From contig CM097887.1 of assembly GCA_044892525.1 (NCBI GenBank), positions 121,808,397 through 121,872,396 on the forward strand: a stretch of DNA of 64,000 nt, written 5' to 3'. Below the pieces are notes generated by a model. That model saw only the letters and a list, made by a program, of their open reading frames with translations. It had not been told where the DNA came from and searched no databases. This document shows positions 3,406 through 40,261 of this stretch, piece by piece. Numbering within the stretch: position 1 is the first letter of the stretch; each line of letters opens with the position of its first letter. The translations under genes and the position numbers were made by a program. This stretch comes from Schmidtea polychroa. Taxonomy: Eukaryota.

Positions 3406-4620
3406 GCATCAGTCTCTCAAATGAACTCCTTTCTCAGATCTGGAAAGCATAAAATCGGTGCCGTTGTGAGTGCTAACTTCATTCCCTCGAATACGTTATT
3501 CGTTCCTTCAGTCCATTTCAGTTTTTTGTTACTCAGACCGCTACATAATTGTTCTAACATCCTTGCTTTATTTGCATACTCACTGATGAATCTTCTATAA
3601 TAATTGCAAATGCCTAAAAAGCTTCGAAGTTTCTTTACGCAACTTGGCTTTCCAAAGTTTTGTATAGCCTGAATCTTAAAAGGATCAGCTTTTACTCCTT
3701 TACTGCTTATGTGTCCTAAGAATCTGATATCTTTATTATTTGACACTTTTCTGGGTTCATTTTTAGTCCTGCTTCAGAATATTGTATAATGTTTTTCTTT
3801 ACTATTCGAATAAATCAAAATGTCATCCAAATAGACCATTGCTCCATTTATTTTGCCTATTACCTTTGTCATCATTTCCTGAAACGTACCTGGTACTGCA
3901 GCAATTCCGAAAGGCATTCTATTGAAAAAGTATTGCCCTTTCTTTGTTGAGAAGGCTGTTTTCTCTTGCGCTTCTTTGTCTAACTCCACTTGGTAATATG
4001 CATTACCAAGATCGATTGAGCCTAATTAAACGGACCCTCCTAACAAATCTAAAATCTCGTCTATGTTTGGCATTGGGAAATTTGATGATTTTTAGATGAT
4101 TATAGAGAGTAATCAATCATGCGCTTGTATATAACAAATGGTAGAATGGTGTAATTTAGAGTAATTAATTTAGAAAACTTGTTCATTCAATGTTATCATT
4201 CGTGGGCTTATGTCAGTCCTTTTAAAAATTTAATGATAATTATTTAGATATTTCTAAGGTAAATTATTGACTTTGATAATTGTAAATGAGTTTTTACTGA
4301 ATTTCCTAAAATATTTAAGCAATCTGTAAATCAAATTGAGTATACATGTGATAAGCTTACTTATAAGTAATTTTTAAATTAATTTATTCAATCTAAATAA
4401 ATTATTTACTAGATTTTATTAGAAAAATCTAAAAATACATGATAGCTCGACGTGATCTCCAGGCGTACTAAGTTTTTATGTAATGGTATATCATTGTGTA
4501 ATATCTATTGAAATATAATAAAAAGGAGAAACTAATAATAATTGTTGAGTATATCATTAAAACAAATAATTTATTAAGAATTTATTTCTTTGGCAACTTT
4601 TATAATACATCAAAACTATT

Positions 4621-4646
4621 TCACTTTTTTTCTATTACGAACACTA

Positions 4647-4678
<32 letters not shown>

Positions 4679-5627
4679 AAATAATAAATAAATGAGATAT
4701 TAATTGCAAATAATATCTTACCTCCATAAACCTCAAGTTCTGCAAAATTTAGTATTTCATTTTTCGTTTGTCTTACACGAATTTTATCAGCTAATTTTCT
4801 GTCACAATTGAGGTTATAAACCGGCTTGTTTTCCGTGATTATTCCACATTGTCCAGTAATCTCATCCTCTTTGTTAAGCAATTCAATAACTGTTCCAACC
4901 ATTCTTTGTGAACAACAATCTTTCCTGTTATGCAAAACTAAAGATTCAATATTGAATGTCCTTCCTAGGAATACTGTCCAAGACGAGTTTAGTGCCTGAG
5001 TTGTGTGGCAAAAATTATCGAACTTCTCGTCATTACAAAATGCTGCTGGATATTGATTATGGCTTTGCTTATTTAAGATAGAATTCTTTCCTTTGGCAAT
5101 GTTGATCGTAGCTTTTGCTGCATTTTTATATGAAGCACCTTAAATGCAGTAAAGACCTTTTATAATTTTAAATATTTCTAACCTTTTACTTCTAGTTCTC
5201 GAAAATTGAGATATTCGTTTCTGGTATGTCTAATTCGAATCATGTTTCCGATTTTATTTCCACATGAAAATACATACGAAGGTTTACTTTCAGTGATTTG
5301 TCCACATTGATGAATGAGTTTATTGGTCTTGGACAACAATTCTACTACTGCTCCAACAATCCTATCTTGACAACAATCAACTCTATTGTGTAGAACAACA
5401 GAATCGATGGTGTATGAACCCTCTAGATCAACCATCCAATATGGATTTCTTTCTGAATTTGTATGGCAGAAATTGGATAAATTGCCATCAACACAGAAAC
5501 TTGAAGGATATTTATTTCCATAATTGCTGCTTTGAGCTGTTGGTTTACCTTTAGAGATAATGTCTTGTGAACGTACGAATTCACACAAAATCAACATAGA
5601 CCATGACACAAGTATTAATTTAATCAT
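4621..5627 (-). CDS. Secreted tandem F-type lectin (two fucolectin domains plus acidic tail), copy 1
   Basis: Exons 5183-5627, 4722-5138, 4621-4676; 44- and 45-bp GT..AG phase-1 introns; hydrophobic N-terminus; both domains have H-X26-R-X-D-X4-R; Glu tract one codon longer than in the other copies. Confidence 0.88.
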
Positions 5628-7054
5628 TTTTATCTAACTTTTAAAATCTTCATTCGGTATTTATAATCATTATTTTGAGTTCAACTGGCTGAAAAATGAA
5701 AAAATTTTAAAATAATATTTTTGAAAGCCACAGGTGTGAGACAGAAGTGTCGAAAAGATAAATATTTAAAGATCAACTATCCTGCTCGAAATATTTACAT
5801 ATTAATCAATTTTATCAAAATTATTTTTCTTGATAAAATAACTCAAAATTTATACATTAAAAATAATAATAATAATATTAAAAATAATAATATTCACCTT
5901 TTTATTCACTAGCTTCTTTTGACCAACTCTTTTCTTTTATATTTGATTTAATTCTATTTTCTTTTCGTAAGTATCTCCTAATTCTATATTTTCGTTTTCC
6001 CTAAACGTCCTATTCTGTCTTTTCCTTTTTCCTACTTTCGATTTCTTCGAATTACTAGCTGAGGCTAAAAGCCGGTTTGCTTTGATTTTCCCATTCCTTA
6101 TATACTCTTCGAAATCGGAATGACAAATGGTTAAATCTAAAACGATTGGATCGCAGGTAAAAGCCAAAGGCAGTGGTACCATCAAGAAATTAATACAGGG
6201 CTTTACATAATAGTGTTAATCTGATGTGATGCAAAAAGAATTGGTGTTAGAGTACGTTCTTGTAAGCTAGGATGAACGCGTTGAATAGAAATGGTGGATA
6301 GTGTAGTGGTTGAAGAGGTTAGGACTAGACCGTAATTCACAAATAGGGTGGTAATTGAATCTTTTCTTTCATAACTTTGTCGTGATTTATTTCCACGTAC
6401 CCAGGGGTAGTCTAGCTAAATTTTCTTTTATAAGCATTGAGTTTGGTTGAAATTCTGAAAACGGACAAGAAAGCCGACCAGCATGCTGACGAAAAATTAC
6501 AATTCCGGGTCAACAAACTCAAGGCTCGGTGTCGGGAAATGAAGTGCACCTGGTTCCACCCAAAAGACATGAGAAAACACATGCGCCAGATTCAAAAATT
6601 TGCAGACGCATAGCGCCAAAAATCACACAGAATTGAGGGTATTATGAATTCAAATGCGACGGTAGGAGAACCATCCAGATATTTCTTCTCTTAAAAACCA
6701 AAAATGTTCTAAATATTTTTATGCAATTGATAAGTTTAGTAAAATAATTTTAAATAAATGCTATTAATACTTAATATATCTCCTTCTTCTCATCAGAAAT
6801 ATTTCAATAACAGTTCTCAAAAGTATTTTTCCTTTTCATTTTGTAATTATACCTCCCGTAGTGTCATAATACATATTGCAAATTTTACCACGTATATTTT
6901 TGCTCATCTTGTTTGTTAGTATAAATACTCATATTCACTACATCATTCGACATATCAGTCAATTTACATTCATTCATACTACAATCCTTAGCATTATTCA
7001 TACATTTATCAACAGCCTCTTTCAACGTTAACAATAAAAACCGTTTTGAATAGC

Positions 7055-8855
7055 TGAAAGGGTAGAATTCACGTTTAAGTTAAAACGGAACATTGCTAAT
7101 AAACATTTAAATTGTATATATCAGATTGCTTAAATTTTTATATAAATATTCAATTTAATTAATTAAAGTAAGTGAATATGAAGAATATGAAGTCGACATT
7201 AATAACCGCACCGATTTTGGTATTTCCGGATTTTAAGAAAGAATTCATACTGGATACGGACGCAAGTTTCGATACAATCGGCGCAGTCTTATCACAGGAG
7301 GATGACATGGGATATGAGCAAGTTATCGCATATGATTCACATGCGATGAATGACCACGAAAGAGGCTATTGTATTACAAGAAAAGAACTCCTGGCTATAT
7401 ATTATTTTTGTAGGCATTTCAATCACTATTTATATGGGAAAAGATTTATACTACGTACAGATCATAAAGCAATAACATTTATGCTAACGAAAAAGCCAAT
7501 TACAGCTCAATTCCAGACCTGGATAAACTATTTAAGTAGCCTTGATATAAAAATAGAATTTAGAAAGGGTACACTACATACGAAAGCAGACATGTTATCG
7601 AGGAAAACGTGTGGCACATGTGTACAATGCCTTATGGAGCACGATAATCCTAAAATGGGAAGAATGAAAACCAGGTTGTTATATATAATGACTGAAGACA
7701 AAGGAGAGGAATGGCAAATGAATAGTGATGAAATAGAGGAGATTAAAAATAAAATAAGAACGCAAACAAGTGGAAGGTTTATAATAGAGGATAACATTAT
7801 TTATACCAAAGATAAAAGAATATGGATACCAGAGAGCAAAAGAAGAGAAATGATTAACAAAACAAATCTATTATTGTGACATGCTAGAGTTGACAAAGTT
7901 ATCAAATACATACAAAACAATTTTGATATGAGAGATCTAATAAAGGAAGAAAAAACGACAATATGAAATTGCGAATCGTTCCAAAAAGTTAAAGTTGTAA
8001 CTACAAAGATGAAAGAGAAACCAAAAGTACTTGAAGCATCCGAACCTTTTGAGAAAATATATATGGATATCTGTGGCCCAATGAAAGAAACATTTAACAG
8101 GAAAAGATACATTTGCGCAATAATCGACCATTACAGCAAATACATCTCGTTAACAGCAATCAATAAACAGGATGAAGAGACAGTTGGAAAGATATTTTTA
8201 AACAACTGGATTCAAAAATTTGAAGCACCAAAAGAACTACATGTAGATTGCGGGAAAACATTCGAAGCTAATAGCATAAAGAATATAAGCAAAAATGCAG
8301 GGTTCGAGATAGTGTATTCGAGCCCATATCATCATAATACGAATGGTATAATCGAAAGACAATTCCGGACAATAAGAGATTTTATTAATGCATCGCTGAA
8401 AGACGGAAATACAAAAGACTGGGCAGACCTTATCCCATAATATACACTCAACGCGACAATCCAAAACAAAACAGGAGTAAGTCCAGCTGAAATTATTTTT
8501 GGTAGGAAAATTGATAGATCGAAATGGTAAAATGATAGTAGAATCAACAGGAACGATATCGCATTGAAAATTGAATGTAAAAGACGAAATGATGAAACAA
8601 CAACTGCAAGGAGGTTGGATGTTGGAGACAAAGTGTTAATCAAACGAGAAATACGAAATAAGGATCAAGATAGATATGAAGGACCATACATGGTAACAAA
8701 ACGAATACACGATCGTAGTTATATGCTGAGAGATAAAAGTGGGAAATCTTTAATCAGGAATATTGAAAAGATTAAAGAATTTTCAAAGAAGGGGGATGAA
8801 AGAATAGAATTCACGTTTAAGTTAAAACGGAACATTGCTAATAAACATTTAAATT
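7055..8855 (+). mobile_element. Internally deleted Ty3/gypsy element (LTR remnant - RNase H - integrase - PPT - LTR remnant), unit copy
   Basis: 59-bp direct repeats starting TG at 7055 and 8797; polypurine tract AAGAAGGGGGA before 8797; RNase H (LDTDAS..KELLAI..RTDHK) and integrase (MDICGP..HVDCG..NGIIER, YEGPY) with stops and frameshifts. Confidence 0.88.
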
Positions 8856-8861
8856 TATTAT

Positions 8862-9545
8862 TATTCATCTTTACGCTTAATTAATAAGTCAAGAAATGCT
8901 ATGGATGAATCCTTCCCAGTTTCACATGTGAATATAATGTTCTTATGCAATCCATTCATGTAATGCAAAAACAGTTTCACGTTCCTTATTTTTAAATATC
9001 AAAAAAATATCATCAACATACCTTTTATACACAATTGGTTTTTCATATTGAAAAGAAGCAATTTTCTTTTCAAAATATGCCAAAAATATTGACAATGCCA
9101 TTGTTGGTGCTAAGGGCGAACCCATAGCCACTCATCAATTTGTTCATACCATTCATTACTAAGAAAATTAACTTTGGAAGTTGCAAACTCTAAAAGCTTC
9201 TAAATGCACTTCCATCACACATTTTATGCGCATCAATATTTATATTTCATAATTCACAACATAAATCGATTGTTTCTTTCAACGGGACATTAGTAAATAA
9301 ACTACATACATCAAACTAAACCATATACTCATTAACATTATTTTTATTCAATTGTCCTATATTGTATAGGCTTTACATAATCTAAATTGAAAACTGTCCT
9401 TACATTCAAACTCAGATTTTATTAAGGGTTTTAATAATCCATCCAAATACTTCGCTATTTTATACTGAGCGGTTCCAACCATAGTTAAAACAGGTCTCAC
9501 GGGAACTCCGTCTTTATGAACTTTGGGAAGTCCGTATAATTTATA
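8862..9545 (-). mobile_element. Penelope-like element RT relic, unit copy
   Basis: KLYGLPKVHKDGVPVRPV..YKIAKYLDGLLKPL, AMGSPLAP, YKRYVDDIFLIF, MNGLHKNIIFTCE..SIAFLDLLI are PLE-type RT motifs; frameshifted. Confidence 0.85.
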
Positions 9546-11832
9546 AGTTAGTCATCCGTCGTGAATGTAGGTATCCTGATGATGACAGTGATGCTATCGA
9601 AATATATAGTGAAAAAGATGTATTAATGATAAATTCCAGTTTTAATGATTTTATTTGAGTGATTATTTAAGAAATTTGATTGTCTAAGGCAATTAAATTC
9701 ATTAGTAATATTTTAGAGTTAATGCCAGCTGGTTTTAAGAAATATTTAAATGAATTTCTATCATTTTTTGTGAATTTCTTTGTTGATTCAAAGAGTATTT
9801 TAAATAATGAGGTTTTAATGGTTATTCTAAGATAAATTTAATTAATTTCTTGATAATTTGTTCTTAAAGTTTTTAATTTGAGTTTTTACAATAATCATGT
9901 GATTTATTTAATTTTGATGATAGTATGAACTTTGTAATGATATTAAATTTGACAAAATGATTTTTTCAATAATTATATTTTCCATGAACTTTTCAATTTC
10001 TCATTAGGCAGTTTACACATTAATGAACTATTAAATATTGAAAATTTTAAACTAAGAAACCAGTTAATTTTATCAAGGATAGATGATGGTAAAATATTTG
10101 AAATTTACATGAAAATTATTGTAGGATATACTGAAATTTCTGATTTGGTTTGAAAGATTTATAATTGCTAGAAAATTATTGAGGGAATCTGTGAAAATTA
10201 TGATCAATCAATGAGAAAATATAATCTCTAGTTAGGTATTTGATGGTAAATTGTGTTAAAACTTTGTTGATTTGTAGAAAATATTGGTTTTAGTGAATTT
10301 GTTCTTTGAAAGTCTTATAATACGGATTTAGCTACTCAATTATTTCAATGGAAGACTGGTGGATGTCAGTAATGTGTAGTTAAAGAAAATTCATAATTTT
10401 TGATGAATTTTTAAAATTTTCAATCGGTTTTAAGAGGATTTAATCGACTGAATTGATATTTTAAAAAGGGATGTGGCAGGTGGGAGAAATCTTTACGGAA
10501 GTTTAGGAATATAGTTGGTTGGATATATATATTTAAAGGTGGTAGAATTATAATTATTTAGTGTGACTTTTAGATCTCTAGAAGACAGCGATTTTATTAA
10601 TATTTGAGATCTTTAGAGATAATTGGAATTGATATCAATTGATATATTAAATTATTTTACTTTTATTTAAAATGTAATAGACAAGTATTGATTGTAAGGG
10701 TATCGATGACAAAATTTGTGAAATATTAACTTAAAAGAGTAATTTTGGGTGTCGTAACAACAAATGAAAGTTAATCTTTATTGAAAGAAATTTCTGATTT
10801 TTCAAATGGCTTTTAATTATATTTCTGGAGATTGAATCAGCTGAATATCAGTTAAGAATAGAATATGGCCATTTGAAGGAATATAGAGATTTTATCGAAT
10901 GGATAAATTTAATCTTTCGATGAATCAAGGTGGTTAATTGTGAATTATACAAAATCAATTGAATAAATTCTTTAATTGATTTTATTTTAAATTTCAAGGA
11001 GTGACTTTCCGTAAGAACAAAGATTTAATTATTTTTAATTATAACTAATTTTATAAATTAATTCTATGAATTTATTAATTTACTTAATTTTGAATGTTTT
11101 ATAATGAAATATTTGTGATATTTAGATAATAGGAATTAAGATCAAAATTAATGGGAGTAGAGTAGAGATAGTCATTTAAAGGGATTTTAATGAATTATAT
11201 TGGTTTGATATTAAAATGGGAATATATAATACTTTACGGATACTTATCGCTAAAATATCAATCTTTAAAGATGGATAGATATTTTATGGAAATTTGATGA
11301 TTTTTAGATGATTATAGAGAGTAATCAATCATGCGCTTGTATATAACAAATGGTAGAATGGTGTAATTTAGAGTAATTAATTTAGAAAACTTGTTCATTC
11401 AATGTTATCATTCGTGGGCTTATGTCAGTCCTTTTAAAAATTTAATGATAATTATTTAGATATTTCTAAGGTAAATTATTGACTTTGATAATTGTAAATG
11501 AGTTTTTACTGAATTTCCTAAAATATTTAAGCAATCTGTAAATCAAATTGAGTATACATGTGATAAGCTTACTTATAAGTAATTTTTAAATTAATTTATT
11601 CAATCTAAATAAATTATTTACTAGATTTTATTAGAAAAATCTAAAAATACATGATAGCTCGACGTGATCTCCAGGCGTACTAAGTTTTTATGTAATGGTA
11701 TATCATTGTGTAATATCTATTGAAATATAATAAAAAGGAGAAACTAATAATAATTGTTGAGTATATCATTAAAACAAATAATTTATTAAGAATTTATTTC
11801 TTTGGCAACTTTTATAATACATCAAAACTATT

Positions 11833-12836
11833 TCACTTTTTTTCTATTACGAACACTATTACTTCTTCTTCTCCTTCTTCTTCTTCTAAATAATAAATAA
11901 ATGAGATATTAATTGCAAATAATATCTTACCTCCATAAACCTCAAGTTCTGCAAAATTTAGTATTTCATTTTTCGTTTGTCTTACACGAATTTTATCAGC
12001 TAATTTTCTGTCACAATTGAGGTTATAAACCGGCTTGTTTTCCGTGATTATTCCACATTGTCCAGTAATCTCATCCTCTTTGTTAAGCAATTCAATAACT
12101 GTTCCAACCATTCTTTGTGAACAACAATCTTTCCTGTTATGCAAAACTAAAGATTCAATATTGAATGTCCTTCCTAGGAATACTGTCCAAGACGAGTTTA
12201 GTGCCTGAGTTGTGTGGCAAAAATTATCGAACTTCTCGTCATTACAAAATGCTGCTGGATATTGATTATGGCTTTGCTTATTTAAGATAGAATTCTTTCC
12301 TTTGGCAATGTTGATCGTAGCTTTTGCTGCATTTTTATATGAAGCACCTTAAATGCAGTAAAGACCTTTTATAATTTTAAATATTTCTAACCTTTTACTT
12401 CTAGTTCTCGAAAATTGAGATATTCGTTTCTGGTATGTCTAATTCGAATCATGTTTCCGATTTTATTTCCACATGAAAATACATACGAAGGTTTACTTTC
12501 AGTGATTTGTCCACATTGATGAATGAGTTTATTGGTCTTGGACAACAATTCTACTACTGCTCCAACAATCCTATCTTGACAACAATCAACTCTATTGTGT
12601 AGAACAACAGAATCGATGGTGTATGAACCCTCTAGATCAACCATCCAATATGGATTTCTTTCTGAATTTGTATGGCAGAAATTGGATAAATTGCCATCAA
12701 CACAGAAACTTGAAGGATATTTATTTCCATAATTGCTGCTTTGAGCTGTTGGTTTACCTTTAGAGATAATGTCTTGTGAACGTACGAATTCACACAAAAT
12801 CAACATAGACCATGACACAAGTATTAATTTAATCAT
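11833..12836 (-). CDS. Tandem F-type lectin, copy 2 (304 aa spliced)
   Basis: Exons 12392-12836, 11931-12347, 11833-11885; same motifs as copy 4. Confidence 0.88.
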
Positions 12837-14263
12837 TTTTATCTAACTTTTAAAATCTTCATTCGGTATTTATAATCATTATTTTGAGTTCAACTGGCTG
12901 AAAAATGAAAAAATTTTAAAATAATATTTTTGAAAGCCACAGGTGTGAGACAGAAGTGTCGAAAAGATAAATATTTAAAGATCAACTATCCTGCTCGAAA
13001 TATTTACATATTAATCAATTTTATCAAAATTATTTTTCTTGATAAAATAACTCAAAATTTATACATTAAAAATAATAATAATAATAATAAAAATAATAAT
13101 ATTCACCTTTTTATTCACTAGCTTCTTTTGACCAACTCTTTTCTTTTATATTTGATTTAATTCTATTTTCTTTTCGTAAGTATCTCCTAATTCTATATTT
13201 TCGTTTTCCCTAAACGTCCTATTCTGTCTTTTCCTTTTTCCTACTTTCGATTTCTTCGAATTACTAGCTGAGGCTAAAAGCCGGTTTGCTTTGATTTTCC
13301 CATTCCTTATATACTCTTCGAAATCGGAATGACAAATGGTTAAATCTAAAACGATTGGATCGCAGGTAAAAGCCAAAGGCAGTGGTACCATCAAGAAATT
13401 AATACAGGGCTTTACATAATAGTGTTAATCTGATGTGATGCAAAAAGAATTGGTGTTAGAGTACGTTCTTGTAAGCTAGGATGAACGCGTTGAATAGAAA
13501 TGGTGGATAGTGTAGTGGTTGAAGAGGTTAGGACTAGACCGTAATTCACAAATAGGGTGGTAATTGAATCTTTTCTTTCATAACTTTGTCGTGATTTATT
13601 TCCACGTACCCAGGGGTAGTCTAGCTAAATTTTCTTTTATAAGCATTGAGTTTGGTTGAAATTCTGAAAACGGACAAGAAAGCCGACCAGCATGCTGACG
13701 AAAAATTACAATTCCGGGTCAACAAACTCAAGGCTCGGTGTCGGGAAATGAAGTGCACCTGGTTCCACCCAAAAGACATGAGAAAACACATGCGCCAGAT
13801 TCAAAAATTTGCAGACGCATAGCGCCAAAAATCACACAGAATTGAGGGTATTATGAATTCAAATGCGACGGTAGGAGAACCATCCAGATATTTCTTCTCT
13901 TAAAAACCAAAAATGTTCTAAATATTTTTATGCAATTGATAAGTTTAGTAAAATAATTTTAAATAAATGCTATTAATACTTAATATATCTCCTTCTTCTC
14001 ATCAGAAATATTTCAATAACAGTTCTCAAAAGTATTTTTCCTTTTCATTTTGTAATTATACCTCCCGTAGTGTCATAATACATATTGCAAATTTTACCAC
14101 GTATATTTTTGCTCATCTTGTTTGTTAGTATAAATACTCATATTCACTACATCATTCGACATATCAGTCAATTTACATTCATTCATACTACAATCCTTAG
14201 CATTATTCATACATTTATCAACAGCCTCTTTCAACGTTAACAATAAAAACCGTTTTGAATAGC

Positions 14264-16064
14264 TGAAAGGGTAGAATTCACGTTTAAGTTAAAACGGAAC
14301 ATTGCTAATAAACATTTAAATTGTATATATCAGATTGCTTAAATTTTTATATAAATATTCAATTTAATTAATTAAAGTAAGTGAATATGAAGAATATGAA
14401 GTCGACATTAATAACCGCACCGATTTTGGTATTTCCGGATTTTAAGAAAGAATTCATACTGGATACGGACGCAAGTTTCGATACAATCGGCGCAGTCTTA
14501 TCACAGGAGGATGACATGGGATATGAGCAAGTTATCGCATATGATTCACATGCGATGAATGACCACGAAAGAGGCTATTGTATTACAAGAAAAGAACTCC
14601 TGGCTATATATTATTTTTGTAGGCATTTCAATCACTATTTATATGGGAAAAGATTTATACTACGTACAGATCATAAAGCAATAACATTTATGCTAACGAA
14701 AAAGCCAATTACAGCTCAATTCCAGACCTGGATAAACTATTTAAGTAGCCTTGATATAAAAATAGAATTTAGAAAGGGTACACTACATACGAAAGCAGAC
14801 ATGTTATCGAGGAAAACGTGTGGCACATGTGTACAATGCCTTATGGAGCACGATAATCCTAAAATGGGAAGAATGAAAACCAGGTTGTTATATATAATGA
14901 CTGAAGACAAAGGAGAGGAATGGCAAATGAATAGTGATGAAATAGAGGAGATTAAAAATAAAATAAGAACGCAAACAAGTGGAAGGTTTATAATAGAGGA
15001 TAACATTATTTATACCAAAGATAAAAGAATATGGATACCAGAGAGCAAAAGAAGAGAAATGATTAACAAAACAAATCTATTATTGTGACATGCTAGAGTT
15101 GACAAAGTTATCAAATACATACAAAACAATTTTGATATGAGAGATCTAATAAAGGAAGAAAAAACGACAATATGAAATTGCGAATCGTTCCAAAAAGTTA
15201 AAGTTGTAACTACAAAGATGAAAGAGAAACCAAAAGTACTTGAAGCATCCGAACCTTTTGAGAAAATATATATGGATATCTGTGGCCCAATGAAAGAAAC
15301 ATTTAACAGGAAAAGATACATTTGCGCAATAATCGACCATTACAGCAAATACATCTCGTTAACAGCAATCAATAAACAGGATGAAGAGACAGTTGGAAAG
15401 ATATTTTTAAACAACTGGATTCAAAAATTTGAAGCACCAAAAGAACTACATGTAGATTGCGGGAAAACATTCGAAGCTAATAGCATAAAGAATATAAGCA
15501 AAAATGCAGGGTTCGAGATAGTGTATTCGAGCCCATATCATCATAATACGAATGGTATAATCGAAAGACAATTCCGGACAATAAGAGATTTTATTAATGC
15601 ATCGCTGAAAGACGGAAATACAAAAGACTGGGCAGACCTTATCCCATAATATACACTCAACGCGACAATCCAAAACAAAACAGGAGTAAGTCCAGCTGAA
15701 ATTATTTTTGGTAGGAAAATTGATAGATCGAAATGGTAAAATGATAGTAGAATCAACAGGAACGATATCGCATTGAAAATTGAATGTAAAAGACGAAATG
15801 ATGAAACAACAACTGCAAGGAGGTTGGATGTTGGAGACAAAGTGTTAATCAAACGAGAAATACGAAATAAGGATCAAGATAGATATGAAGGACCATACAT
15901 GGTAACAAAACGAATACACGATCGTAGTTATATGCTGAGAGATAAAAGTGGGAAATCTTTAATCAGGAATATTGAAAAGATTAAAGAATTTTCAAAGAAG
16001 GGGGATGAAAGAATAGAATTCACGTTTAAGTTAAAACGGAACATTGCTAATAAACATTTAAATT
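14264..16064 (+). mobile_element. Deleted gypsy element, unit copy
   Basis: 7055-8855 shifted by +7209. Confidence 0.88.
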
Positions 16065-16070
16065 TATTAT

Positions 16071-16754
16071 TATTCATCTTTACGCTTAATTAATAAGTCA
16101 AGAAATGCTATGGATGAATCCTTCCCAGTTTCACATGTGAATATAATGTTCTTATGCAATCCATTCATGTAATGCAAAAACAGTTTCACGTTCCTTATTT
16201 TTAAATATCAAAAAAATATCATCAACATACCTTTTATACACAATTGGTTTTTCATATTGAAAAGAAGCAATTTTCTTTTCAAAATATGCCAAAAATATTG
16301 ACAATGCCATTGTTGGTGCTAAGGGCGAACCCATAGCCACTCATCAATTTGTTCATACCATTCATTACTAAGAAAATTAACTTTGGAAGTTGCAAACTCT
16401 AAAAGCTTCTAAATGCACTTCCATCACACATTTTATGCGCATCAATATTTATATTTCATAATTCACAACATAAATCGATTGTTTCTTTCAACGGGACATT
16501 AGTAAATAAACTACATACATCAAACTAAACCATATACTCATTAACATTATTTTTATTCAATTGTCCTATATTGTATAGGCTTTACATAATCTAAATTGAA
16601 AACTGTCCTTACATTCAAACTCAGATTTTATTAAGGGTTTTAATAATCCATCCAAATACTTCGCTATTTTATACTGAGCGGTTCCAACCATAGTTAAAAC
16701 AGGTCTCACGGGAACTCCGTCTTTATGAACTTTGGGAAGTCCGTATAATTTATA
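16071..16754 (-). mobile_element. Penelope-like RT relic, unit copy
   Basis: 8862-9545 shifted by +7209. Confidence 0.85.
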
Positions 16755-23673: not shown

Positions 23674-23805
23674 AATAGTTTTGATGTATTATAAAAGTTG
23701 CCAAAGAAATAAATTCTTAATAAATTATTTGTTTTAATGATATACTCAACAATTATTATTAGTTTCTCCTTTTTATTATATTTCAATAGATATTACACAA
23801 TGATA

Positions 23806-25906
23806 TACCATTACATAAAAACTTAGTACGCCTGGAGATCACGTCGAGCTATCATGTATTTTTAGATTTTTCTAATAAAATCTAGTAAATAATTTATTTA
23901 GATTGAATAAATTAATTTAAAAATTACTTATAAGTAAGCTTATCACATGTATACTCAATTTGATTTACAGATTGCTTAAATATTTTAGGAAATTCAGTAA
24001 AAACTCATTTACAATTATCAAAGTCAATAATTTACCTTAGAAATATCTAAATAATTATCATTAAATTTTTAAAAGGACTGACATAAGCCCACGAATGATA
24101 ACATTGAATGAACAAGTTTTCTAAATTAATTACTCTAAATTACACCATTCTACCATTTGTTATATACAAGCGCATGATTGATTACTCTCTATAATCATCT
24201 AAAAATCATCAAATTTCCATAAAATATCTATCCATCTTTAAAGATTGATATTTTAGCGATAAGTATCCGTAAAGTATTATATATTCCCATTTTAATATCA
24301 AACCAATATAATTCATTAAAATCCCTTTAAATGACTATCTCTACTCTACTCCCATTAATTTTGATCTTAATTCCTATTATCTAAATATCACAAATATTTC
24401 ATTATAAAACATTCAAAATTAAGTAAATTAATAAATTCATAGAATTAATTTATAAAATTAGTTATAATTAAAAATAATTAAATCTTTGTTCTTACGGAAA
24501 GTCACTCCTTGAAATTTAAAATAAAATCAATTAAAGAATTTATTCAATTGATTTTGTATAATTCACAATTAACCACCTTGATTCATCGAAAGATTAAATT
24601 TATCCATTCGATAAAATCTCTATATTCCTTCAAATGGCCATATTCTATTCTTAACTGATATTCAGCTGATTCAATCTCCAGAAATATAATTAAAAGCCAT
24701 TTGAAAAATCAGAAATTTCTTTCAATAAAGATTAACTTTCATTTGTTGTTACGACACCCAAAATTACTCTTTTAAGTTAATATTTCACAAATTTTGTCAT
24801 CGATACCCTTACAATCAATACTTGTCTATTACATTTTAAATAAAAGTAAAATAATTTAATATATCAATTGATATCAATTCCAATTATCTCTAAAGATCTC
24901 AAATATTAATAAAATCGCTGTCTTCTAGAGATCTAAAAGTCACACTAAATAATTATAATTCTACCACCTTTAAATATATATATCCAACCAACTATATTCC
25001 TAAACTTCCGTAAAGATTTCTCCCACCTGCCACATCCCTTTTTAAAATATCAATTCAGTCGATTAAATCCTCTTAAAACCGATTGAAAATTTTAAAAATT
25101 CATCAAAAATTATGAATTTTCTTTAACTACACATTACTGACATCCACCAGTCTTCCATTGAAATAATTGAGTAGCTAAATCCGTATTATAAGACTTTCAA
25201 AGAACAAATTCACTAAAACCAATATTTTCTACAAATCAACAAAGTTTTAACACAATTTACCATCAAATACCTAACTAGAGATTATATTTTCTCATTGATT
25301 GATCATAATTTTCACAGATTCCCTCAATAATTTTCTAGCAATTATAAATCTTTCAAACCAAATCAGAAATTTCAGTATATCCTACAATAATTTTCATGTA
25401 AATTTCAAATATTTTACCATCATCTATCCTTGATAAAATTAACTGGTTTCTTAGTTTAAAATTTTCAATATTTAATAGTTCATTAATGTGTAAACTGCCT
25501 AATGAGAAATTGAAAAGTTCATGGAAAATATAATTATTGAAAAAATCATTTTGTCAAATTTAATATCATTACAAAGTTCATACTATCATCAAAATTAAAT
25601 AAATCACATGATTATTGTAAAAACTCAAATTAAAAACTTTAAGAGCAAATTATCAAGAAATTAATTAAATTTATCTTAGAATAACCATTAAAACCTCATT
25701 ATTTAAAATACTCTTTGAATCAACAAAGAAATTCACAAAAAATGATAGAAATTCATTTAAATATTTCTTAAAACCAGCTGGCATTAACTCTAAAATATTA
25801 CTAATGAATTTAATTGCCTTAGACAATCAAATTTCTTAAATAATCACTCAAATAAAATCATTAAAACTGGAATTTATCATTAATACATCTTTTTCACTAT
25901 ATATTT
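23806..25906 (+). pseudogene. Possible decayed leucine-rich-repeat gene (also 31015-33115 +; 9600-11700 and 16809-18909 -; partial at 4076-4490)
   Basis: Stop-riddled frames contain LRR-like segments: VFLDFSNKI (23856), IRIIRLSKNKFTK (25179), IINLSNQIRNFSISYNNF (25341). Pattern recognition only, in very AT-rich DNA. Confidence 0.35.
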
Positions 25907-25960
25907 CGATAGCATCACTGTCATCATCAGGATACCTACATTCACGACGGATGACTAACT

Positions 25961-26644
25961 TATAAATTATACGGACTTCCCAAAGTTCATAAAGACGGAG
26001 TTCCCGTGAGACCTGTTTTAACTATGGTTGGAACCGCTCAGTATAAAATAGCGAAGTATTTGGATGGATTATTAAAACCCTTAATAAAATCTGAGTTTGA
26101 ATGTAAGGACAGTTTTCAATTTAGATTATGTAAAGCCTATACAATATAGGACAATTGAATAAAAATAATGTTAATGAGTATATGGTTTAGTTTGATGTAT
26201 GTAGTTTATTTACTAATGTCCCGTTGAAAGAAACAATCGATTTATGTTGTGAATTATGAAATATAAATATTGATGCGCATAAAATGTGTGATGGAAGTGC
26301 ATTTAGAAGCTTTTAGAGTTTGCAACTTCCAAAGTTAATTTTCTTAGTAATGAATGGTATGAACAAATTGATGAGTGGCTATGGGTTCGCCCTTAGCACC
26401 AACAATGGCATTGTCAATATTTTTGGCATATTTTGAAAAGAAAATTGCTTCTTTTCAATATGAAAAACCAATTGTGTATAAAAGGTATGTTGATGATATT
26501 TTTTTGATATTTAAAAATAAGGAACGTGAAACTGTTTTTGCATTACATGAATGGATTGCATAAGAACATTATATTCACATGTGAAACTGGGAAGGATTCA
26601 TCCATAGCATTTCTTGACTTATTAATTAAGCGTAAAGATGAATA
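25961..26644 (+). mobile_element. Penelope-like RT relic, unit copy
   Basis: Mirror of 16071-16754. Confidence 0.85.
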
Positions 26645-26650
26645 ATAATA

Positions 26651-28451
26651 AATTTAAATGTTTATTAGCAATGTTCCGTTTTAACTTAAACGTGAATTCT
26701 ATTCTTTCATCCCCCTTCTTTGAAAATTCTTTAATCTTTTCAATATTCCTGATTAAAGATTTCCCACTTTTATCTCTCAGCATATAACTACGATCGTGTA
26801 TTCGTTTTGTTACCATGTATGGTCCTTCATATCTATCTTGATCCTTATTTCGTATTTCTCGTTTGATTAACACTTTGTCTCCAACATCCAACCTCCTTGC
26901 AGTTGTTGTTTCATCATTTCGTCTTTTACATTCAATTTTCAATGCGATATCGTTCCTGTTGATTCTACTATCATTTTACCATTTCGATCTATCAATTTTC
27001 CTACCAAAAATAATTTCAGCTGGACTTACTCCTGTTTTGTTTTGGATTGTCGCGTTGAGTGTATATTATGGGATAAGGTCTGCCCAGTCTTTTGTATTTC
27101 CGTCTTTCAGCGATGCATTAATAAAATCTCTTATTGTCCGGAATTGTCTTTCGATTATACCATTCGTATTATGATGATATGGGCTCGAATACACTATCAC
27201 GAACCCTGCATTTTTGCTTATATTCTTTATGCTATTAGCTTCGAATGTTTTCCCGCAATCTACATGTAGTTCTTTTGGTGCTTCAAATTTTTGAATCCAG
27301 TTGTTTAAAAATATCTTTCCAACTGTCTCTTCATCCTGTTTATTGATTGCTGTTAACGAGATGTATTTGCTGTAATGGTCGATTATTGCGCAAATGTATC
27401 TTTTCCTGTTAAATGTTTCTTTCATTGGGCCACAGATATCCATATATATTTTCTCAAAAGGTTCGGATGCTTCAAGTACTTTTGGTTTCTCTTTCATCTT
27501 TGTAGTTACAACTTTAACTTTTTGGAACGATTCGCAATTTCATATTGTCGTTTTTTCTTCCTTTATTAGATCTCTCATATCAAAATTGTTTTGTATGTAT
27601 TTGATAACTTTGTCAACTCTAGCATGTCACAATAATAGATTTGTTTTGTTAATCATTTCTCTTCTTTTGCTCTCTGGTATCCATATTCTTTTATCTTTGG
27701 TATAAATAATGTTATCCTCTATTATAAACCTTCCACTTGTTTGCGTTCTTATTTTATTTTTAATCTCCTCTATTTCATCACTATTCATTTGCCATTCCTC
27801 TCCTTTGTCTTCAGTCATTATATATAACAACCTGGTTTTCATTCTTCCCATTTTAGGATTATCGTGCTCCATAAGGCATTGTACACATGTGCCACACGTT
27901 TTCCTCGATAACATGTCTGCTTTCGTATGTAGTGTACCCTTTCTAAATTCTATTTTTATATCAAGGCTACTTAAATAGTTTATCCAGGTCTGGAATTGAG
28001 CTGTAATTGGCTTTTTCGTTAGCATAAATGTTATTGCTTTATGATCTGTACGTAGTATAAATCTTTTCCCATATAAATAGTGATTGAAATGCCTACAAAA
28101 ATAATATATAGCCAGGAGTTCTTGTCTTGTAATACAATAGCCTCTTTCGTGGTCATTCATCGCATGTGAATCATATGCGATAACTTGCTCATATCCCATG
28201 TCATCCTCCTGTGATAAGACTGCGCCGATTGTATCGAAACTTGCGTCCGTATCCAGTATGAATTCTTTCTTAAAATCCGGAAATACCAAAATCGGTGCGG
28301 TTATTAATGTCGACTTCATATTCTTCATATTCACTTACTTTAATTAATTAAATTGAATATTTATATAAAAATTTAAGCAATCTGATATATACAATTTAAA
28401 TGTTTATTAGCAATGTTCCGTTTTAACTTAAACGTGAATTCTACCCTTTCA
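26651..28451 (-). mobile_element. Deleted gypsy element, unit copy
   Basis: Mirror of 14264-16064. Confidence 0.88.
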
Positions 28452-29878
28452 GCTATTCAAAACGGTTTTTATTGTTAACGTTGAAAGAGGCTGTTGATAA
28501 ATGTATGAATAATGCTAAGGATTGTAGTATGAATGAATGTAAATTGACTGATATGTCGAATGATGTAGTGAATATGAGTATTTATACTAACAAACAAGAT
28601 GAGCAAAAATATACGTGGTAAAATTTGCAATATGTATTATGACACTACGGGAGGTATAATTACAAAATGAAAAGGAAAAATACTTTTGAGAACTGTTATT
28701 GAAATATTTCTGATGAGAAGAAGGAGATATATTAAGTATTAATAGCATTTATTTAAAATTATTTTACTAAACTTATCAATTGCATAAAAATATTTAGAAC
28801 ATTTTTGGTTTTTAAGAGAAGAAATATCTGGATGGTTCTCCTACCGTCGCATTTGAATTCATAATACCCTCAATTCTGTGTGATTTTTGGCGCTATGCGT
28901 CTGCAAATTTTTGAATCTGGCGCATGTGTTTTCTCATGTCTTCTGGGTGGAACCAGGTGCACTTCATTTCCCGACACCGAGCCTTGAGTTTGTTGACCCG
29001 GAATTGTAATTTTTCGTCAGCATGCTGGTCGGCTTTCTTGTCCGTTTTCAGAATTTCAACCAAACTCAATGCTTATAAAAGAAAATTTAGCTAGACTACC
29101 CCTGGGTACGTGGAAATAAATCACGACAAAGTTATGAAAGAAAAGATTCAATTACCACCCTATTTGTGAATTACGGTCTAGTCCTAACCTCTTCAACCAC
29201 TACACTATCCACCATTTCTATTCAACGCGTTCATCCTAGCTTACAAGAACGTACTCTAACACCAATTCTTTTTGCATCACATCAGATTAACACTATTATG
29301 TAAAGCCCTGTATTAATTTCTTGATGGTACCACTGCCTTTGGCTTTTACCTGCGATCCAATCGTTTTAGATTTAACCATTTGTCATTCCGATTTCGAAGA
29401 GTATATAAGGAATGGGAAAATCAAAGCAAACCGGCTTTTAGCCTCAGCTAGTAATTCGAAGAAATCGAAAGTAGGAAAAAGGAAAAGACAGAATAGGACG
29501 TTTAGGGAAAACGAAAATATAGAATTAGGAGATACTTACGAAAAGAAAATAGAATTAAATCAAATATAAAAGAAAAGAGTTGGTCAAAAGAAGCTAGTGA
29601 ATAAAAAGGTGAATATTATTATTTTTATTATTATTATTATTATTTTTAATGTATAAATTTTGAGTTATTTTATCAAGAAAAATAATTTTGATAAAATTGA
29701 TTAATATGTAAATATTTCGAGCAGGATAGTTGATCTTTAAATATTTATCTTTTCGACACTTCTGTCTCACACCTGTGGCTTTCAAAAATATTATTTTAAA
29801 ATTTTTTCATTTTTCAGCCAGTTGAACTCAAAATAATGATTATAAATACCGAATGAAGATTTTAAAAGTTAGATAAAA

Positions 29879-30882
29879 ATGATTAAATTAATACTTGTGT
29901 CATGGTCTATGTTGATTTTGTGTGAATTCGTACGTTCACAAGACATTATCTCTAAAGGTAAACCAACAGCTCAAAGCAGCAATTATGGAAATAAATATCC
30001 TTCAAGTTTCTGTGTTGATGGCAATTTATCCAATTTCTGCCATACAAATTCAGAAAGAAATCCATATTGGATGGTTGATCTAGAGGGTTCATACACCATC
30101 GATTCTGTTGTTCTACACAATAGAGTTGATTGTTGTCAAGATAGGATTGTTGGAGCAGTAGTAGAATTGTTGTCCAAGACCAATAAACTCATTCATCAAT
30201 GTGGACAAATCACTGAAAGTAAACCTTCGTATGTATTTTCATGTGGAAATAAAATCGGAAACATGATTCGAATTAGACATACCAGAAACGAATATCTCAA
30301 TTTTCGAGAACTAGAAGTAAAAGGTTAGAAATATTTAAAATTATAAAAGGTCTTTACTGCATTTAAGGTGCTTCATATAAAAATGCAGCAAAAGCTACGA
30401 TCAACATTGCCAAAGGAAAGAATTCTATCTTAAATAAGCAAAGCCATAATCAATATCCAGCAGCATTTTGTAATGACGAGAAGTTCGATAATTTTTGCCA
30501 CACAACTCAGGCACTAAACTCGTCTTGGACAGTATTCCTAGGAAGGACATTCAATATTGAATCTTTAGTTTTGCATAACAGGAAAGATTGTTGTTCACAA
30601 AGAATGGTTGGAACAGTTATTGAATTGCTTAACAAAGAGGATGAGATTACTGGACAATGTGGAATAATCACGGAAAACAAGCCGGTTTATAACCTCAATT
30701 GTGACAGAAAATTAGCTGATAAAATTCGTGTAAGACAAACGAAAAATGAAATACTAAATTTTGCAGAACTTGAGGTTTATGGAGGTAAGATATTATTTGC
30801 AATTAATATCTCATTTATTTATTATTTAGAAGAAGAAGAAGGAGAAGAAGAAGTAATAGTGTTCGTAATAGAAAAAAAGTGA
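29879..30882 (+). CDS. Tandem F-type lectin, copy 5
   Basis: Exons 29879-30323, 30368-30784, 30830-30882; same motifs as copy 4. Confidence 0.88.
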
Positions 30883-33169
30883 AATAGTTTTGATGTATTA
30901 TAAAAGTTGCCAAAGAAATAAATTCTTAATAAATTATTTGTTTTAATGATATACTCAACAATTATTATTAGTTTCTCCTTTTTATTATATTTCAATAGAT
31001 ATTACACAATGATATACCATTACATAAAAACTTAGTACGCCTGGAGATCACGTCGAGCTATCATGTATTTTTAGATTTTTCTAATAAAATCTAGTAAATA
31101 ATTTATTTAGATTGAATAAATTAATTTAAAAATTACTTATAAGTAAGCTTATCACATGTATACTCAATTTGATTTACAGATTGCTTAAATATTTTAGGAA
31201 ATTCAGTAAAAACTCATTTACAATTATCAAAGTCAATAATTTACCTTAGAAATATCTAAATAATTATCATTAAATTTTTAAAAGGACTGACATAAGCCCA
31301 CGAATGATAACATTGAATGAACAAGTTTTCTAAATTAATTACTCTAAATTACACCATTCTACCATTTGTTATATACAAGCGCATGATTGATTACTCTCTA
31401 TAATCATCTAAAAATCATCAAATTTCCATAAAATATCTATCCATCTTTAAAGATTGATATTTTAGCGATAAGTATCCGTAAAGTATTATATATTCCCATT
31501 TTAATATCAAACCAATATAATTCATTAAAATCCCTTTAAATGACTATCTCTACTCTACTCCCATTAATTTTGATCTTAATTCCTATTATCTAAATATCAC
31601 AAATATTTCATTATAAAACATTCAAAATTAAGTAAATTAATAAATTCATAGAATTAATTTATAAAATTAGTTATAATTAAAAATAATTAAATCTTTGTTC
31701 TTACGGAAAGTCACTCCTTGAAATTTAAAATAAAATCAATTAAAGAATTTATTCAATTGATTTTGTATAATTCACAATTAACCACCTTGATTCATCGAAA
31801 GATTAAATTTATCCATTCGATAAAATCTCTATATTCCTTCAAATGGCCATATTCTATTCTTAACTGATATTCAGCTGATTCAATCTCCAGAAATATAATT
31901 AAAAGCCATTTGAAAAATCAGAAATTTCTTTCAATAAAGATTAACTTTCATTTGTTGTTACGACACCCAAAATTACTCTTTTAAGTTAATATTTCACAAA
32001 TTTTGTCATCGATACCCTTACAATCAATACTTGTCTATTACATTTTAAATAAAAGTAAAATAATTTAATATATCAATTGATATCAATTCCAATTATCTCT
32101 AAAGATCTCAAATATTAATAAAATCGCTGTCTTCTAGAGATCTAAAAGTCACACTAAATAATTATAATTCTACCACCTTTAAATATATATATCCAACCAA
32201 CTATATTCCTAAACTTCCGTAAAGATTTCTCCCACCTGCCACATCCCTTTTTAAAATATCAATTCAGTCGATTAAATCCTCTTAAAACCGATTGAAAATT
32301 TTAAAAATTCATCAAAAATTATGAATTTTCTTTAACTACACATTACTGACATCCACCAGTCTTCCATTGAAATAATTGAGTAGCTAAATCCGTATTATAA
32401 GACTTTCAAAGAACAAATTCACTAAAACCAATATTTTCTACAAATCAACAAAGTTTTAACACAATTTACCATCAAATACCTAACTAGAGATTATATTTTC
32501 TCATTGATTGATCATAATTTTCACAGATTCCCTCAATAATTTTCTAGCAATTATAAATCTTTCAAACCAAATCAGAAATTTCAGTATATCCTACAATAAT
32601 TTTCATGTAAATTTCAAATATTTTACCATCATCTATCCTTGATAAAATTAACTGGTTTCTTAGTTTAAAATTTTCAATATTTAATAGTTCATTAATGTGT
32701 AAACTGCCTAATGAGAAATTGAAAAGTTCATGGAAAATATAATTATTGAAAAAATCATTTTGTCAAATTTAATATCATTACAAAGTTCATACTATCATCA
32801 AAATTAAATAAATCACATGATTATTGTAAAAACTCAAATTAAAAACTTTAAGAGCAAATTATCAAGAAATTAATTAAATTTATCTTAGAATAACCATTAA
32901 AACCTCATTATTTAAAATACTCTTTGAATCAACAAAGAAATTCACAAAAAATGATAGAAATTCATTTAAATATTTCTTAAAACCAGCTGGCATTAACTCT
33001 AAAATATTACTAATGAATTTAATTGCCTTAGACAATCAAATTTCTTAAATAATCACTCAAATAAAATCATTAAAACTGGAATTTATCATTAATACATCTT
33101 TTTCACTATATATTTCGATAGCATCACTGTCATCATCAGGATACCTACATTCACGACGGATGACTAACT

Positions 33170-33853
33170 TATAAATTATACGGACTTCCCAAAGTTCATA
33201 AAGACGGAGTTCCCGTGAGACCTGTTTTAACTATGGTTGGAACCGCTCAGTATAAAATAGCGAAGTATTTGGATGGATTATTAAAACCCTTAATAAAATC
33301 TGAGTTTGAATGTAAGGACAGTTTTCAATTTAGATTATGTAAAGCCTATACAATATAGGACAATTGAATAAAAATAATGTTAATGAGTATATGGTTTAGT
33401 TTGATGTATGTAGTTTATTTACTAATGTCCCGTTGAAAGAAACAATCGATTTATGTTGTGAATTATGAAATATAAATATTGATGCGCATAAAATGTGTGA
33501 TGGAAGTGCATTTAGAAGCTTTTAGAGTTTGCAACTTCCAAAGTTAATTTTCTTAGTAATGAATGGTATGAACAAATTGATGAGTGGCTATGGGTTCGCC
33601 CTTAGCACCAACAATGGCATTGTCAATATTTTTGGCATATTTTGAAAAGAAAATTGCTTCTTTTCAATATGAAAAACCAATTGTGTATAAAAGGTATGTT
33701 GATGATATTTTTTTGATATTTAAAAATAAGGAACGTGAAACTGTTTTTGCATTACATGAATGGATTGCATAAGAACATTATATTCACATGTGAAACTGGG
33801 AAGGATTCATCCATAGCATTTCTTGACTTATTAATTAAGCGTAAAGATGAATA
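33170..33853 (+). mobile_element. Penelope-like RT relic, unit copy
   Basis: Mirror of 8862-9545. Confidence 0.85.
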
Positions 33854-33859
33854 ATAATA

Positions 33860-35660
33860 AATTTAAATGTTTATTAGCAATGTTCCGTTTTAACTTAAAC
33901 GTGAATTCTATTCTTTCATCCCCCTTCTTTGAAAATTCTTTAATCTTTTCAATATTCCTGATTAAAGATTTCCCACTTTTATCTCTCAGCATATAACTAC
34001 GATCGTGTATTCGTTTTGTTACCATGTATGGTCCTTCATATCTATCTTGATCCTTATTTCGTATTTCTCGTTTGATTAACACTTTGTCTCCAACATCCAA
34101 CCTCCTTGCAGTTGTTGTTTCATCATTTCGTCTTTTACATTCAATTTTCAATGCGATATCGTTCCTGTTGATTCTACTATCATTTTACCATTTCGATCTA
34201 TCAATTTTCCTACCAAAAATAATTTCAGCTGGACTTACTCCTGTTTTGTTTTGGATTGTCGCGTTGAGTGTATATTATGGGATAAGGTCTGCCCAGTCTT
34301 TTGTATTTCCGTCTTTCAGCGATGCATTAATAAAATCTCTTATTGTCCGGAATTGTCTTTCGATTATACCATTCGTATTATGATGATATGGGCTCGAATA
34401 CACTATCACTAACCCTGCATTTTTGCTTATATTCTTTATGCTATTAGCTTCGAATGTTTTCCCGCAATCTACATGTAGTTCTTTTGGTGCTTCAAATTTT
34501 TGAATCCAGTTGTTTAAAAATATCTTTCCAACTGTCTCTTCATCCTGTTTATTGATTGCTGTTAACGAGATGTATTTGCTGTAATGGTCGATTTTTGCGC
34601 AAATGTATCTTTTCCTGTTAAATGTTTCTTTCATTGGGCCACAGATATCCATATATATTTTCTCAAAAGGTTCGGATGCTTCAAGTACTTTTGGTTTCTC
34701 TTTCATCTTTGTAGTTACAACTTTAACTTTTTGGAACGATTCGCAATTTCATATTGTCGTTTTTTCTTCCTTTATTAGATCTCTCATATCAAAATTGTTT
34801 TGTATGTATTTGATAACTTTGTCAACTCTAGCATGTCACAATAATAGATTTGTTTTGTTAATCATTTCTCTTCTTTTGCTCTCTGGTATCCATATTCTTT
34901 TATCTTTGGTATAAATAATGTTATCCTCTATTATAAACCTTCCACTTGTTTGCGTTCTTATTTTATTTTTAATCTCCTCTATTTCATCACTATTCATTTG
35001 CCATTCCTCTCCTTTGTCTTCAGTCATTATATATAACAACCTGGTTTTCATTCTTCCCATTTTAGGATTATCGTGCTCCATAAGGCATTGTACACATGTG
35101 CCACACGTTTTCCTCGATAACATGTCTGCTTTCGTATGTAGTGTACCCTTTCTAAATTCTATTTTTATATCAAGGCTACTTAAATAGTTTATCCAGGTCT
35201 GGAATTGAGCTGTAATTGGCTTTTTCGTTAGCATAAATGTTATTGCTTTATGATCTGTACGTAGTATAAATCTTTTCCCATATAAATAGTGATTGAAATG
35301 CCTACAAAAATAATATATAGCCAGGAGTTCTTGTCTTGTAATACAATAGCCTCTTTCGTGGTCATTCATCGCATGTGAATCATATGCGATAACTTGCTCA
35401 TATCCCATGTCATCCTCCTGTGATAAGACTGCGCCGATTGTATCGAAACTTGCGTCCGTATCCAGTATGAATTCTTTCTTAAAATCCGGAAATACCAAAA
35501 TCGGTGCGGTTATTAATGTCGACTTCATATTCTTCATATTCACTTACTTTAATTAATTAAATTGAATATTTATATAAAAATTTAAGCAATCTGATATATA
35601 CAATTTAAATGTTTATTAGCAATGTTCCGTTTTAACTTAAACGTGAATTCTACCCTTTCA
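33860..35660 (-). mobile_element. Deleted gypsy element, unit copy
   Basis: Mirror of 7055-8855; carries two private SNPs in integrase. Confidence 0.88.
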
Positions 35661-37017
35661 GCTATTCAAAACGGTTTTTATTGTTAACGTTGAAAGAGGC
35701 TGTTGATAAATGTATGAATAATGCTAAGGATTGTAGTATGAATGAATGTAAATTGACTGATATGTCGAATGATGTAGTGAATATGAGTATTTATACTAAC
35801 AAACAAGATGAGCAAAAATATACGTGGTAAAATTTGCAATATGTATTATGACACTACGGGAGGTATAATTACAAAATGAAAAGGAAAAATACTTTTGAGA
35901 ACTGTTATTGAAATATTTCTGATGAGAAGAAGGAGATATATTAAGTATTAATAGCATTTATTTAAAATTATTTTACTAAACTTATCAATTGCATAAAAAT
36001 ATTTAGAACATTTTTGGTTTTTAAGAGAAGAAATATCTGGATGGTTCTCCTACCGTCGCATTTGAATTCATAATACCCTCAATTCTGTGTGATTTTTGGC
36101 GCTATGCGTCTGCAAATTTTTGAATCTGGCGCATGTGTTTTCTCATGTCTTCTGGGTGGAACCAGGTGCACTTCATTTCCCGACACCGAGCCTTGAGTTT
36201 GTTGACCCGGAATTGTAATTTTTCGTCAGCATGCTGGTCGGCTTTCTTGTCCGTTTTCAGAATTTCAACCAAACTCAATGCTTATAAAAGAAAATTTAGC
36301 TAGACTACCCCTGGGTACGTGGAAATAAATCACGACAAAGTTATGAAAGAAAAGATTCAATTACCACCCTATTTGTGAATTACGGTCTAGTCCTAACCTC
36401 TTCAACCACTACACTATCCACCATTTCTATTCAACGCGTTCATCCTAGCTTACAAGAACGTACTCTAACACCAATTCTTTTTGCATCACATCAGATTAAC
36501 ACTATTATGTAAAGCCCTGTATTAATTTCTTGATGGTACCACTGCCTTTGGCTTTTACCTGCGATCCAATCGTTTTAGATTTCGCTCTGAGAACTGGGAG
36601 TACCTATTTTGATTCTGCTCCCATTTGTCATCGACCAACAGCTGAAGTTCCTGTTCAATATATCGAATCATACCGTCTTCAATTTTTGCTCAAAGCGATT
36701 GAGCATGTCGTCGTCTCAACAGGGAACAGTTCCATCTTGAACGTCCCTCTCGGTCTGACATAGTCTCCGGATGTCACTCTGCAGGGAGTTGAATCAGGCT
36801 GATTTGGCGTGACTGAGACTGAGTTCTTGCTTCACTATTTTTCGCCCGAGGTTTTCCAATTATTTACAACTTATTTTTGGCGCAGATTGTCTATCAGCAC
36901 ATCAAGCTTTAATCGATTATAATTTGAAAAGAGTTTTAATTATTTAAATTAATTATTTAAGATTTTTTACAAGAATATATGGTCAAATATTTTGATAAAT
37001 CGATGGCCACGTGAAAT

Positions 37018-40140: not shown

Positions 40141-40261
40141 TAGAACAAAAATTAAATAGTTTTGATATATTACAACAGATCCTAAATAAATAATAATAAA
40201 AAAATAATAATAATAATAATAATAATTTATTAGAAAGATCAATAAATAAATCAATAAATAT

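Follow-up and report, generated by a model that had tools for sequence, protein, structure and literature searches.

F-type lectins form a family for which frequent gene duplication is a stated hallmark (PMC5712786, PMC8878817), and large palindromes, defined operationally as inverted repeats of more than 8 kb with more than 99% identity (PMC8327919), have been described on the primate X and Y chromosomes (PMC8327919, PMC8600007). Here we describe a locus of Schmidtea polychroa that combines these known kinds, an ampliconic palindrome and an expanded lectin cluster. It lies within a stretch of 64,000 nucleotides (assembly GCA_044892525.1, contig CM097887.1, positions 121,808,397 to 121,872,396 of the forward strand), hereafter the window, whose own numbering is used throughout; the amplicon, at 4076-36582, was read from this single assembly and carries five copies of an F-type lectin gene. 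Our analysis of the sequence suggests that it is likely to be a real and recent local amplification, produced by tandem duplication and then by an inverted rearrangement with two junctions.

The amplicon resembles the primate X/Y palindromes (PMC8327919, PMC8600007) in its arms, which exceed 8 kb and 99.9% identity, in its short spacer and in the coding gene family held within the arms. It departs from them in that each arm is itself a tandem array, in that no sign of arm-to-arm conversion appears among its few variable columns, and in that the gene is an immune-type lectin and not a testis gene family. With the inverted duplications and inversions that arise through fold-back, template switching or staggered breaks (PMC3907307, PMC10766183) it shares junctions in inverted orientation, minimal microhomology and a kilobase-scale centre. 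However, its arms are not copies of each other's flanks, as fold-back would have them (PMC3907307), nor is there a forward-inverted-forward triplication of the kind known from origin-dependent inverted-repeat amplification (ODIRA; PMC10766183). As in tandem segmental duplications, the same head-to-tail junction is found in every unit, with no element termini. Compared with lineage-specific expansions of F-type lectins, the copies at this locus are still essentially identical and their junctions readable, and the mechanism of duplication can therefore be reconstructed.

Geometry and junctions of the amplicon

The repeated unit is 7,209 bp long. By self-BLAST and a repeat finder, 2.29 units (16,476 bp) make up a forward array at 4076-20551 on the plus strand, and 2.18 units (15,702 bp) an inverted array at 20881-36582 on the minus strand. 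The direct copies begin at 4076, 11288 and 18497, spaced by 7212 and then 7209 bp, and the inverted copies at 20881, 28090 and 35299. Between the mirror arms, each of 14,419 bp (6133-20551 and 22164-36582), there are 10 mismatches and no gaps (99.93% identity). The coordinates given in the first-pass annotation are thereby reproduced to the base. The 1,612-bp non-palindromic centre that it had described between the mirror arms keeps its size but is not uniform, since only 329 bp of it (segment J, 20552-20880, plus strand) are foreign to the units and separate the two arrays, whereas the other 1,283 bp are more inverted array. No N run occurs inside 4076-36582, and no further copy of the unit was found elsewhere in the window.

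The unit has a single true internal breakpoint, on either side of which lie R (4076-6133, 2,058 bp), with the lectin gene, and U (6134-11287, 5,154 bp). The forward array then reads R-U-R-U-R, and the inverted array is the reverse complement of U-R-U-R followed by the first 1,283 bp of U. All array boundaries are sharp. Down to the nucleotide, the R|U junction of the tandem duplication is the same at 6133|6134, 13342|13343, 22163|22164 and 29372|29373, the last two being inverted; its microhomology does not exceed 1 nt. Its presence in both arms indicates that the tandem duplication predates the flip that separated them. Only two junctions are unique, and neither lies in shared repeats: the outer one, 4075|4076, joins flank A (a gypsy-like reverse transcriptase (RT) remnant on the minus strand) to R with 0 nt of microhomology, and the inner one, 20880|20881, joins J to the inverted array at the equivalent of position 7416 with 1 nt. 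The inverted array ends outward at 36582|36583, where U starts beside flank Z at the exact nucleotide used in R|U.

The ancestral state of these joins can be read from an older repeat. The first 58 bp of J continue a repeat that begins inside R, which marks J as an ancestral flank. The RT fragment at 8925-9198 recurs with 96.7% identity at positions 20610-20880. The repeat belongs to an unclassified interspersed family with copies at 5886-6133 plus 20552-20611 and at 40824-41126, about 73% identical to each other. The second copy (40824-41126, plus strand), which spans the equivalent of the R-to-J boundary, served as outgroup for the junctions: it is collinear through the breakpoint, with 45 of 61 positions identical beyond it, while the start of U matches it at chance level. 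Because the older copy continues across R-to-J and not into U, R-to-J is ancestral and R|U derived; likewise, the end of R falls inside a repeat that runs on into J, and is thus a breakpoint and not the terminus of an element. Flank Z, standing beside U, is the other ancestral flank. The simplest ancestor would have the order Z-U-R-J in direct orientation, its lectin lying on the plus strand like the older paralogue remnant at 39688-40193.

These junctions bear directly on two other explanations. The first is that the unit is a mobile element, a rolling-circle or composite transposon with a captured lectin that inserted repeatedly. Fragments of transposable elements do occur in and around the unit. 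Nevertheless, all copies lie side by side with one head-to-tail junction in common, terminal repeats, target duplications and poly-A are lacking, the end of R lies inside the older repeat that continues into J, and the rest of the window holds no other copy, all of which makes this origin scarcely credible. Helitron-type and composite-transposon origins were rejected. We also considered the repeat shared by 8925-9198 and 20610-20880 as a long terminal repeat (LTR) and discarded the idea, the repeat being minus-strand RT sequence of coding type. The notion that the inversion cut a single retroelement into flanks A and Z was abandoned as well, given that both hold the same RT region.

The second explanation, a simple intrastrand fold-back of the breakage-fusion-bridge type, would account for an inverted duplication with a kilobase-scale spacer, and human cases with spacers of 766 bp to 70 kb have been reported (PMC3907307). 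It is nonetheless very improbable here, and the content of the junctions contradicts it. The arm of a fold-back can hold only sequence of the other arm, whereas in this amplicon each arm owns a flank with no counterpart in the other: J occurs only where the left arm ends inward, and the Z|U flank only where the right arm ends outward. Additionally, the microhomology at 20880|20881 is 1 nt, as against 2-8 nt in the human series (PMC3907307).

Variation among copies, age and order of events

Eleven columns vary across the units. Most are substitutions that fall outside homopolymers, and a single tree accounts for all of them. Three substitutions, spread over U, are fixed between all forward and all inverted units (forward/inverted positions are, for example, 6563/36152, 8307/34408 and 9861/32854). 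One variant is common to the two outer inverted units only, the innermost inverted unit grouping at that site with the forward units. The others are private, including two in the outermost inverted unit and three in the leftmost R, two of the latter in a microsatellite. The two forward copies of U are identical, and no mosaic pattern between arms appears among these few (11) columns. Such tree-like and arm-specific variants argue for real paralogues.

Several observations weigh against a real and recent amplification. The equal number of units in both arms needs a coincidence or a further mechanism. The gene and the unit are absent from the outside protein, contig and metagenome collections searched, and consequently the structure rests on one assembly. 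Arm-specific variants would also be expected if two haplotypes had been joined head-to-head. In this regard, an assembly artefact would consist of a shorter direct array whose apparent inverted half is the other haplotype, or the path of a chimeric read, placed head-to-head with it. Two haplotypes would yield the three arm-fixed differences, the arms are 99.93% identical over about a typical long-read length, and the searched collections offered no outside confirmation of the locus. On the other side, the block is gapless, and the two unique junctions together make the reciprocal pair of a single rearrangement; as they lie outside shared repeats, a mis-join of the assembly graph is unlikely. 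The centre is not the perfect fold-back or hairpin that a read with a missed adapter would give. Moreover, the site at which the innermost inverted unit sides with the forward ones does not follow a pure two-haplotype pattern. On balance, we regard an artefact as unlikely and a real amplification as the better account.

The arms diverge by 0.07%, in agreement with the very low divergence and the recent origin proposed in the first-pass annotation. At such a divergence, the block would probably be tens to hundreds of thousands of generations old at most. Concerted evolution, which mimics youth in primate palindromes (PMC8327919), could also keep the copies near-identical, and the palindrome may then not be a recent event at all: its arms exceed 8 kb and 99% identity, as in the operational definition of large palindromes (PMC8327919), and they contain a protein-coding gene. 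We consider this improbable. The non-coding retroelement remains are as well conserved as the gene, the three arm-specific substitutions across U point to no recent arm-to-arm conversion there, and the older local relatives are just 73-97% identical. Youth is favoured over concerted evolution because of the arm-specific sites and of the dead retroelement sequence, conserved to the same degree as the gene.

The sequence shows two steps of a recent amplification. A non-homologous tandem duplication first placed U directly after the end of R. A rearrangement using 4075|4076 and 20880|20881 then set the J-side half, inverted, beside the Z-side half, leaving a palindrome with 14.4-kb arms. Two versions of this second step can be envisaged. 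In version (a), a two-breakpoint inversion would have turned the J-side half of a direct array of at least five units, and some sequence would have been lost where the breaks occurred. In version (b), a template switch or staggered break would have produced an inverted duplication of a two-unit array, and each arm would later have gained one unit by unequal crossing-over. Both versions fit the variants without any conversion, and the array probably grew by later unequal crossover. A three-unit ancestor with a 10.5-kb staggered duplication was rejected. Such an ancestor should have left forward unit 1 and inverted unit 2 alike, but these two differ at more sites than do units of one arm; with its predicted nearest neighbours wrong, this scheme would need later homogenisation.

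The lectin gene and the remainder of the unit

The five genes were recognized through identical open reading frames (ORFs) of 149 aa at 5178-5627, 12387-12836 and 19596-20045 on the minus strand and at 22670-23119 and 29879-30328 on the plus strand. The complete copies are F1 (4621-5627), F2 (11833-12836) and F3 (19042-20045), on the minus strand, and I3 (22670-23673) and I2 (29879-30882), on the plus strand. The product is a secreted lectin, of 305 aa in F1 and of 304 aa in each of the others, encoded in three exons. In F1, exon 1 (5627-5183) encodes a signal peptide and a first F-type domain, exon 2 (5138-4722) a second F-type domain, and exon 3 (4676-4621) a short, Glu-rich acidic tail and the stop; the introns measure 44 and 45 nt. 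F2, F3, I3 and I2 are identical, and F1 differs from them only in a coding GAA microsatellite, where its protein has one extra Glu and one Glu/Gly change. This microsatellite, which encodes the C-terminal tail (4624-4676 and equivalents), gives nine Glu in F1 as against an interrupted run of eight, and could tag individual copies in transcripts. The claim of the first-pass annotation that the F-type lectin gene is intact and present in five near-identical copies is thus borne out.

The first-exon product matches Pfam F5_F8_type_C_2 (PF22633, E 5.5e-15) and PF00754 (E 1.4e-09). Among sequences in the PDB it matches FBP32 (3cqo, 1.5e-16) and eel agglutinin (1k12, 9e-11), together with 3le0 and 2j1r. 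A structure model of the first domain reached a predicted local distance difference test (pLDDT) of 89.8 and a predicted template-modelling score (pTM) of 0.81, and its top 11 Foldseek matches in the PDB are all F-type lectin domains (template-modelling (TM) scores of 0.71-0.79), which places it in the F-type beta-jellyroll fold. The first and second domains share 49% identity. The fucose-binding motif of the family consists of a His and, downstream, Arg-x-Asp-x4-(Arg/Lys) (PMC5712786). The His/Arg/Arg triad is kept in both domains, in gapless alignment to the motif of 1k12; the spacing after the His is 26 residues in this lectin, compared with X24 as written in PMC5712786. From this conserved triad, the lectin is predicted to bind fucose or fucosylated glycans.

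As in the binary tandem-domain F-type lectins typified by striped bass FBP32, a signal peptide is followed by two F-type domains (family: PMC5712786), and the protein is an ordinary binary-type member of this family. It has the His/Arg/Arg triad and the predicted fold in common with both FBP32 (3cqo; two domains) and eel agglutinin (1k12; a single domain), but is only about 25-30% identical to the solved F-type lectins. It further differs from FBP32 and eel agglutinin in its short Glu-rich tail encoded by a coding microsatellite, and in its second domain, which has lost most of the conserved motif after the His.

The closest relative, P0003 (UniParc, 301 aa), aligns without gaps and collinearly with the three-exon model at 79% and 74% identity, and the tails of the two proteins end alike; this collinearity indicates that the introns are common to a relative. 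A search with P0003 as query returned P0003 alone. Neither an exact match to the first-exon ORF nor any close copy of the gene was found among about 15 billion proteins, and a word-indexed protein search with the lectin gave 0 matches. Exact-sequence contig look-ups for the lectin ORF and for P0003, as well as a metagenome scan with a 29-nt exon string, returned nothing. The sequence common to all five genes extends for at least 506 bp upstream and at least 545 bp downstream; a TATA-like string and AATAAA signals were spotted by eye only.

The lectin is, as earlier proposed, the only intact gene found in the unit. U contains two remnants of retroelements. One is a Ty3/gypsy-like pol remnant at 7172-8881 (plus strand) with RNase H (ribonuclease H), integrase core and a C-terminal piece, repeated at 14381-16090 (plus) and at 26625-28334 and 33834-35543 (minus), and as a cut piece at 20881-21125 (minus). 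Its pieces all lie in one frame broken by 4 stops; it is 5'-truncated, the part of the unit that precedes it having yielded no gag, protease or RT domain. A second, unrelated and heavily degraded RT fragment (8864-9551, minus strand) recurs in every U, with a weak RVT_1 match, many stops and at least one frame change; it may be Penelope-like, a lead that no tool confirmed. The description of everything outside the lectin as retroelement debris is right for only some 2.4 kb, or about one third of the unit, that are recognisably derived from retroelements, and does not extend to about 2.8 kb that match nothing. The retroelement ORF matches environmental contigs and distant spider and mussel elements only, and an exact-sequence contig look-up for the RNase H ORF found nothing.

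Neighbourhood and biological meaning

Beyond the right arm lies the fragmentary older lectin paralogue at 39688-40193 (plus strand), with 84-93% nucleotide identity to R. It retains only the N-terminal ~41 aa and the C-terminal ~45 aa, in different frames, and is followed by an (AGA)18 microsatellite where the intact copies have their acidic-tail repeat. The outer flanks of the amplicon (2585-4075, minus strand, and 37015-37637, plus strand) consist of degraded RT/RNase H remnants of other LTR-type elements. Farther along, exons of glucose-6-phosphate dehydrogenase (G6PD) are spread over more than 14 kb on the minus strand (47633-62333; Pfam G6PD_N, 4.9e-24 and 4.3e-11; G6PD_C, 1.4e-07), with hAT-like transposase ORFs between them at 52388-52870 (minus) and 54947-56060 (plus). 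Three N runs of 147-151 bases lie outside the amplicon, at 42549-42699, 52194-52344 and 61123-61269.

Other features of the window include a pair of direct repeats of about 165 bp, 92% identical (825-989 and 1173-1339), two open frames at 1762-2232 (plus strand) that resemble exons of a host gene and whose sole match is a weak, below-threshold one to Cullin (E 0.0018), and a (TTA)36 microsatellite at 45798-45906. The sequence is AT-rich (29% GC), and no Rfam family was found in the window.

Taken together, and provided that the assembly is right, the locus is a neat but ordinary local gene amplification, with no new kind of element or mechanism. Since the five genes share their flanks, an up to fivefold output of the lectin is plausible if all of them are expressed. 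A stronger reading, in which a palindrome outside the mammalian sex chromosomes is selectively maintained and dynamically resized, its inverted tandem arrays letting the lectin copy number shift quickly while the copies stay homogeneous, is in our view a long shot; were it true, the locus would be an invertebrate analogue of the primate ampliconic palindromes, with an innate-immunity lectin that varies between individuals. If the assembly is right, the amplicon offers an unusually clean snapshot of the expansion of an immune-type lectin family, with copies young enough for every rearrangement junction and the order of events to be still readable, and its paralogue-specific sites, together with the tail microsatellite, are ready markers for copy number and expression.

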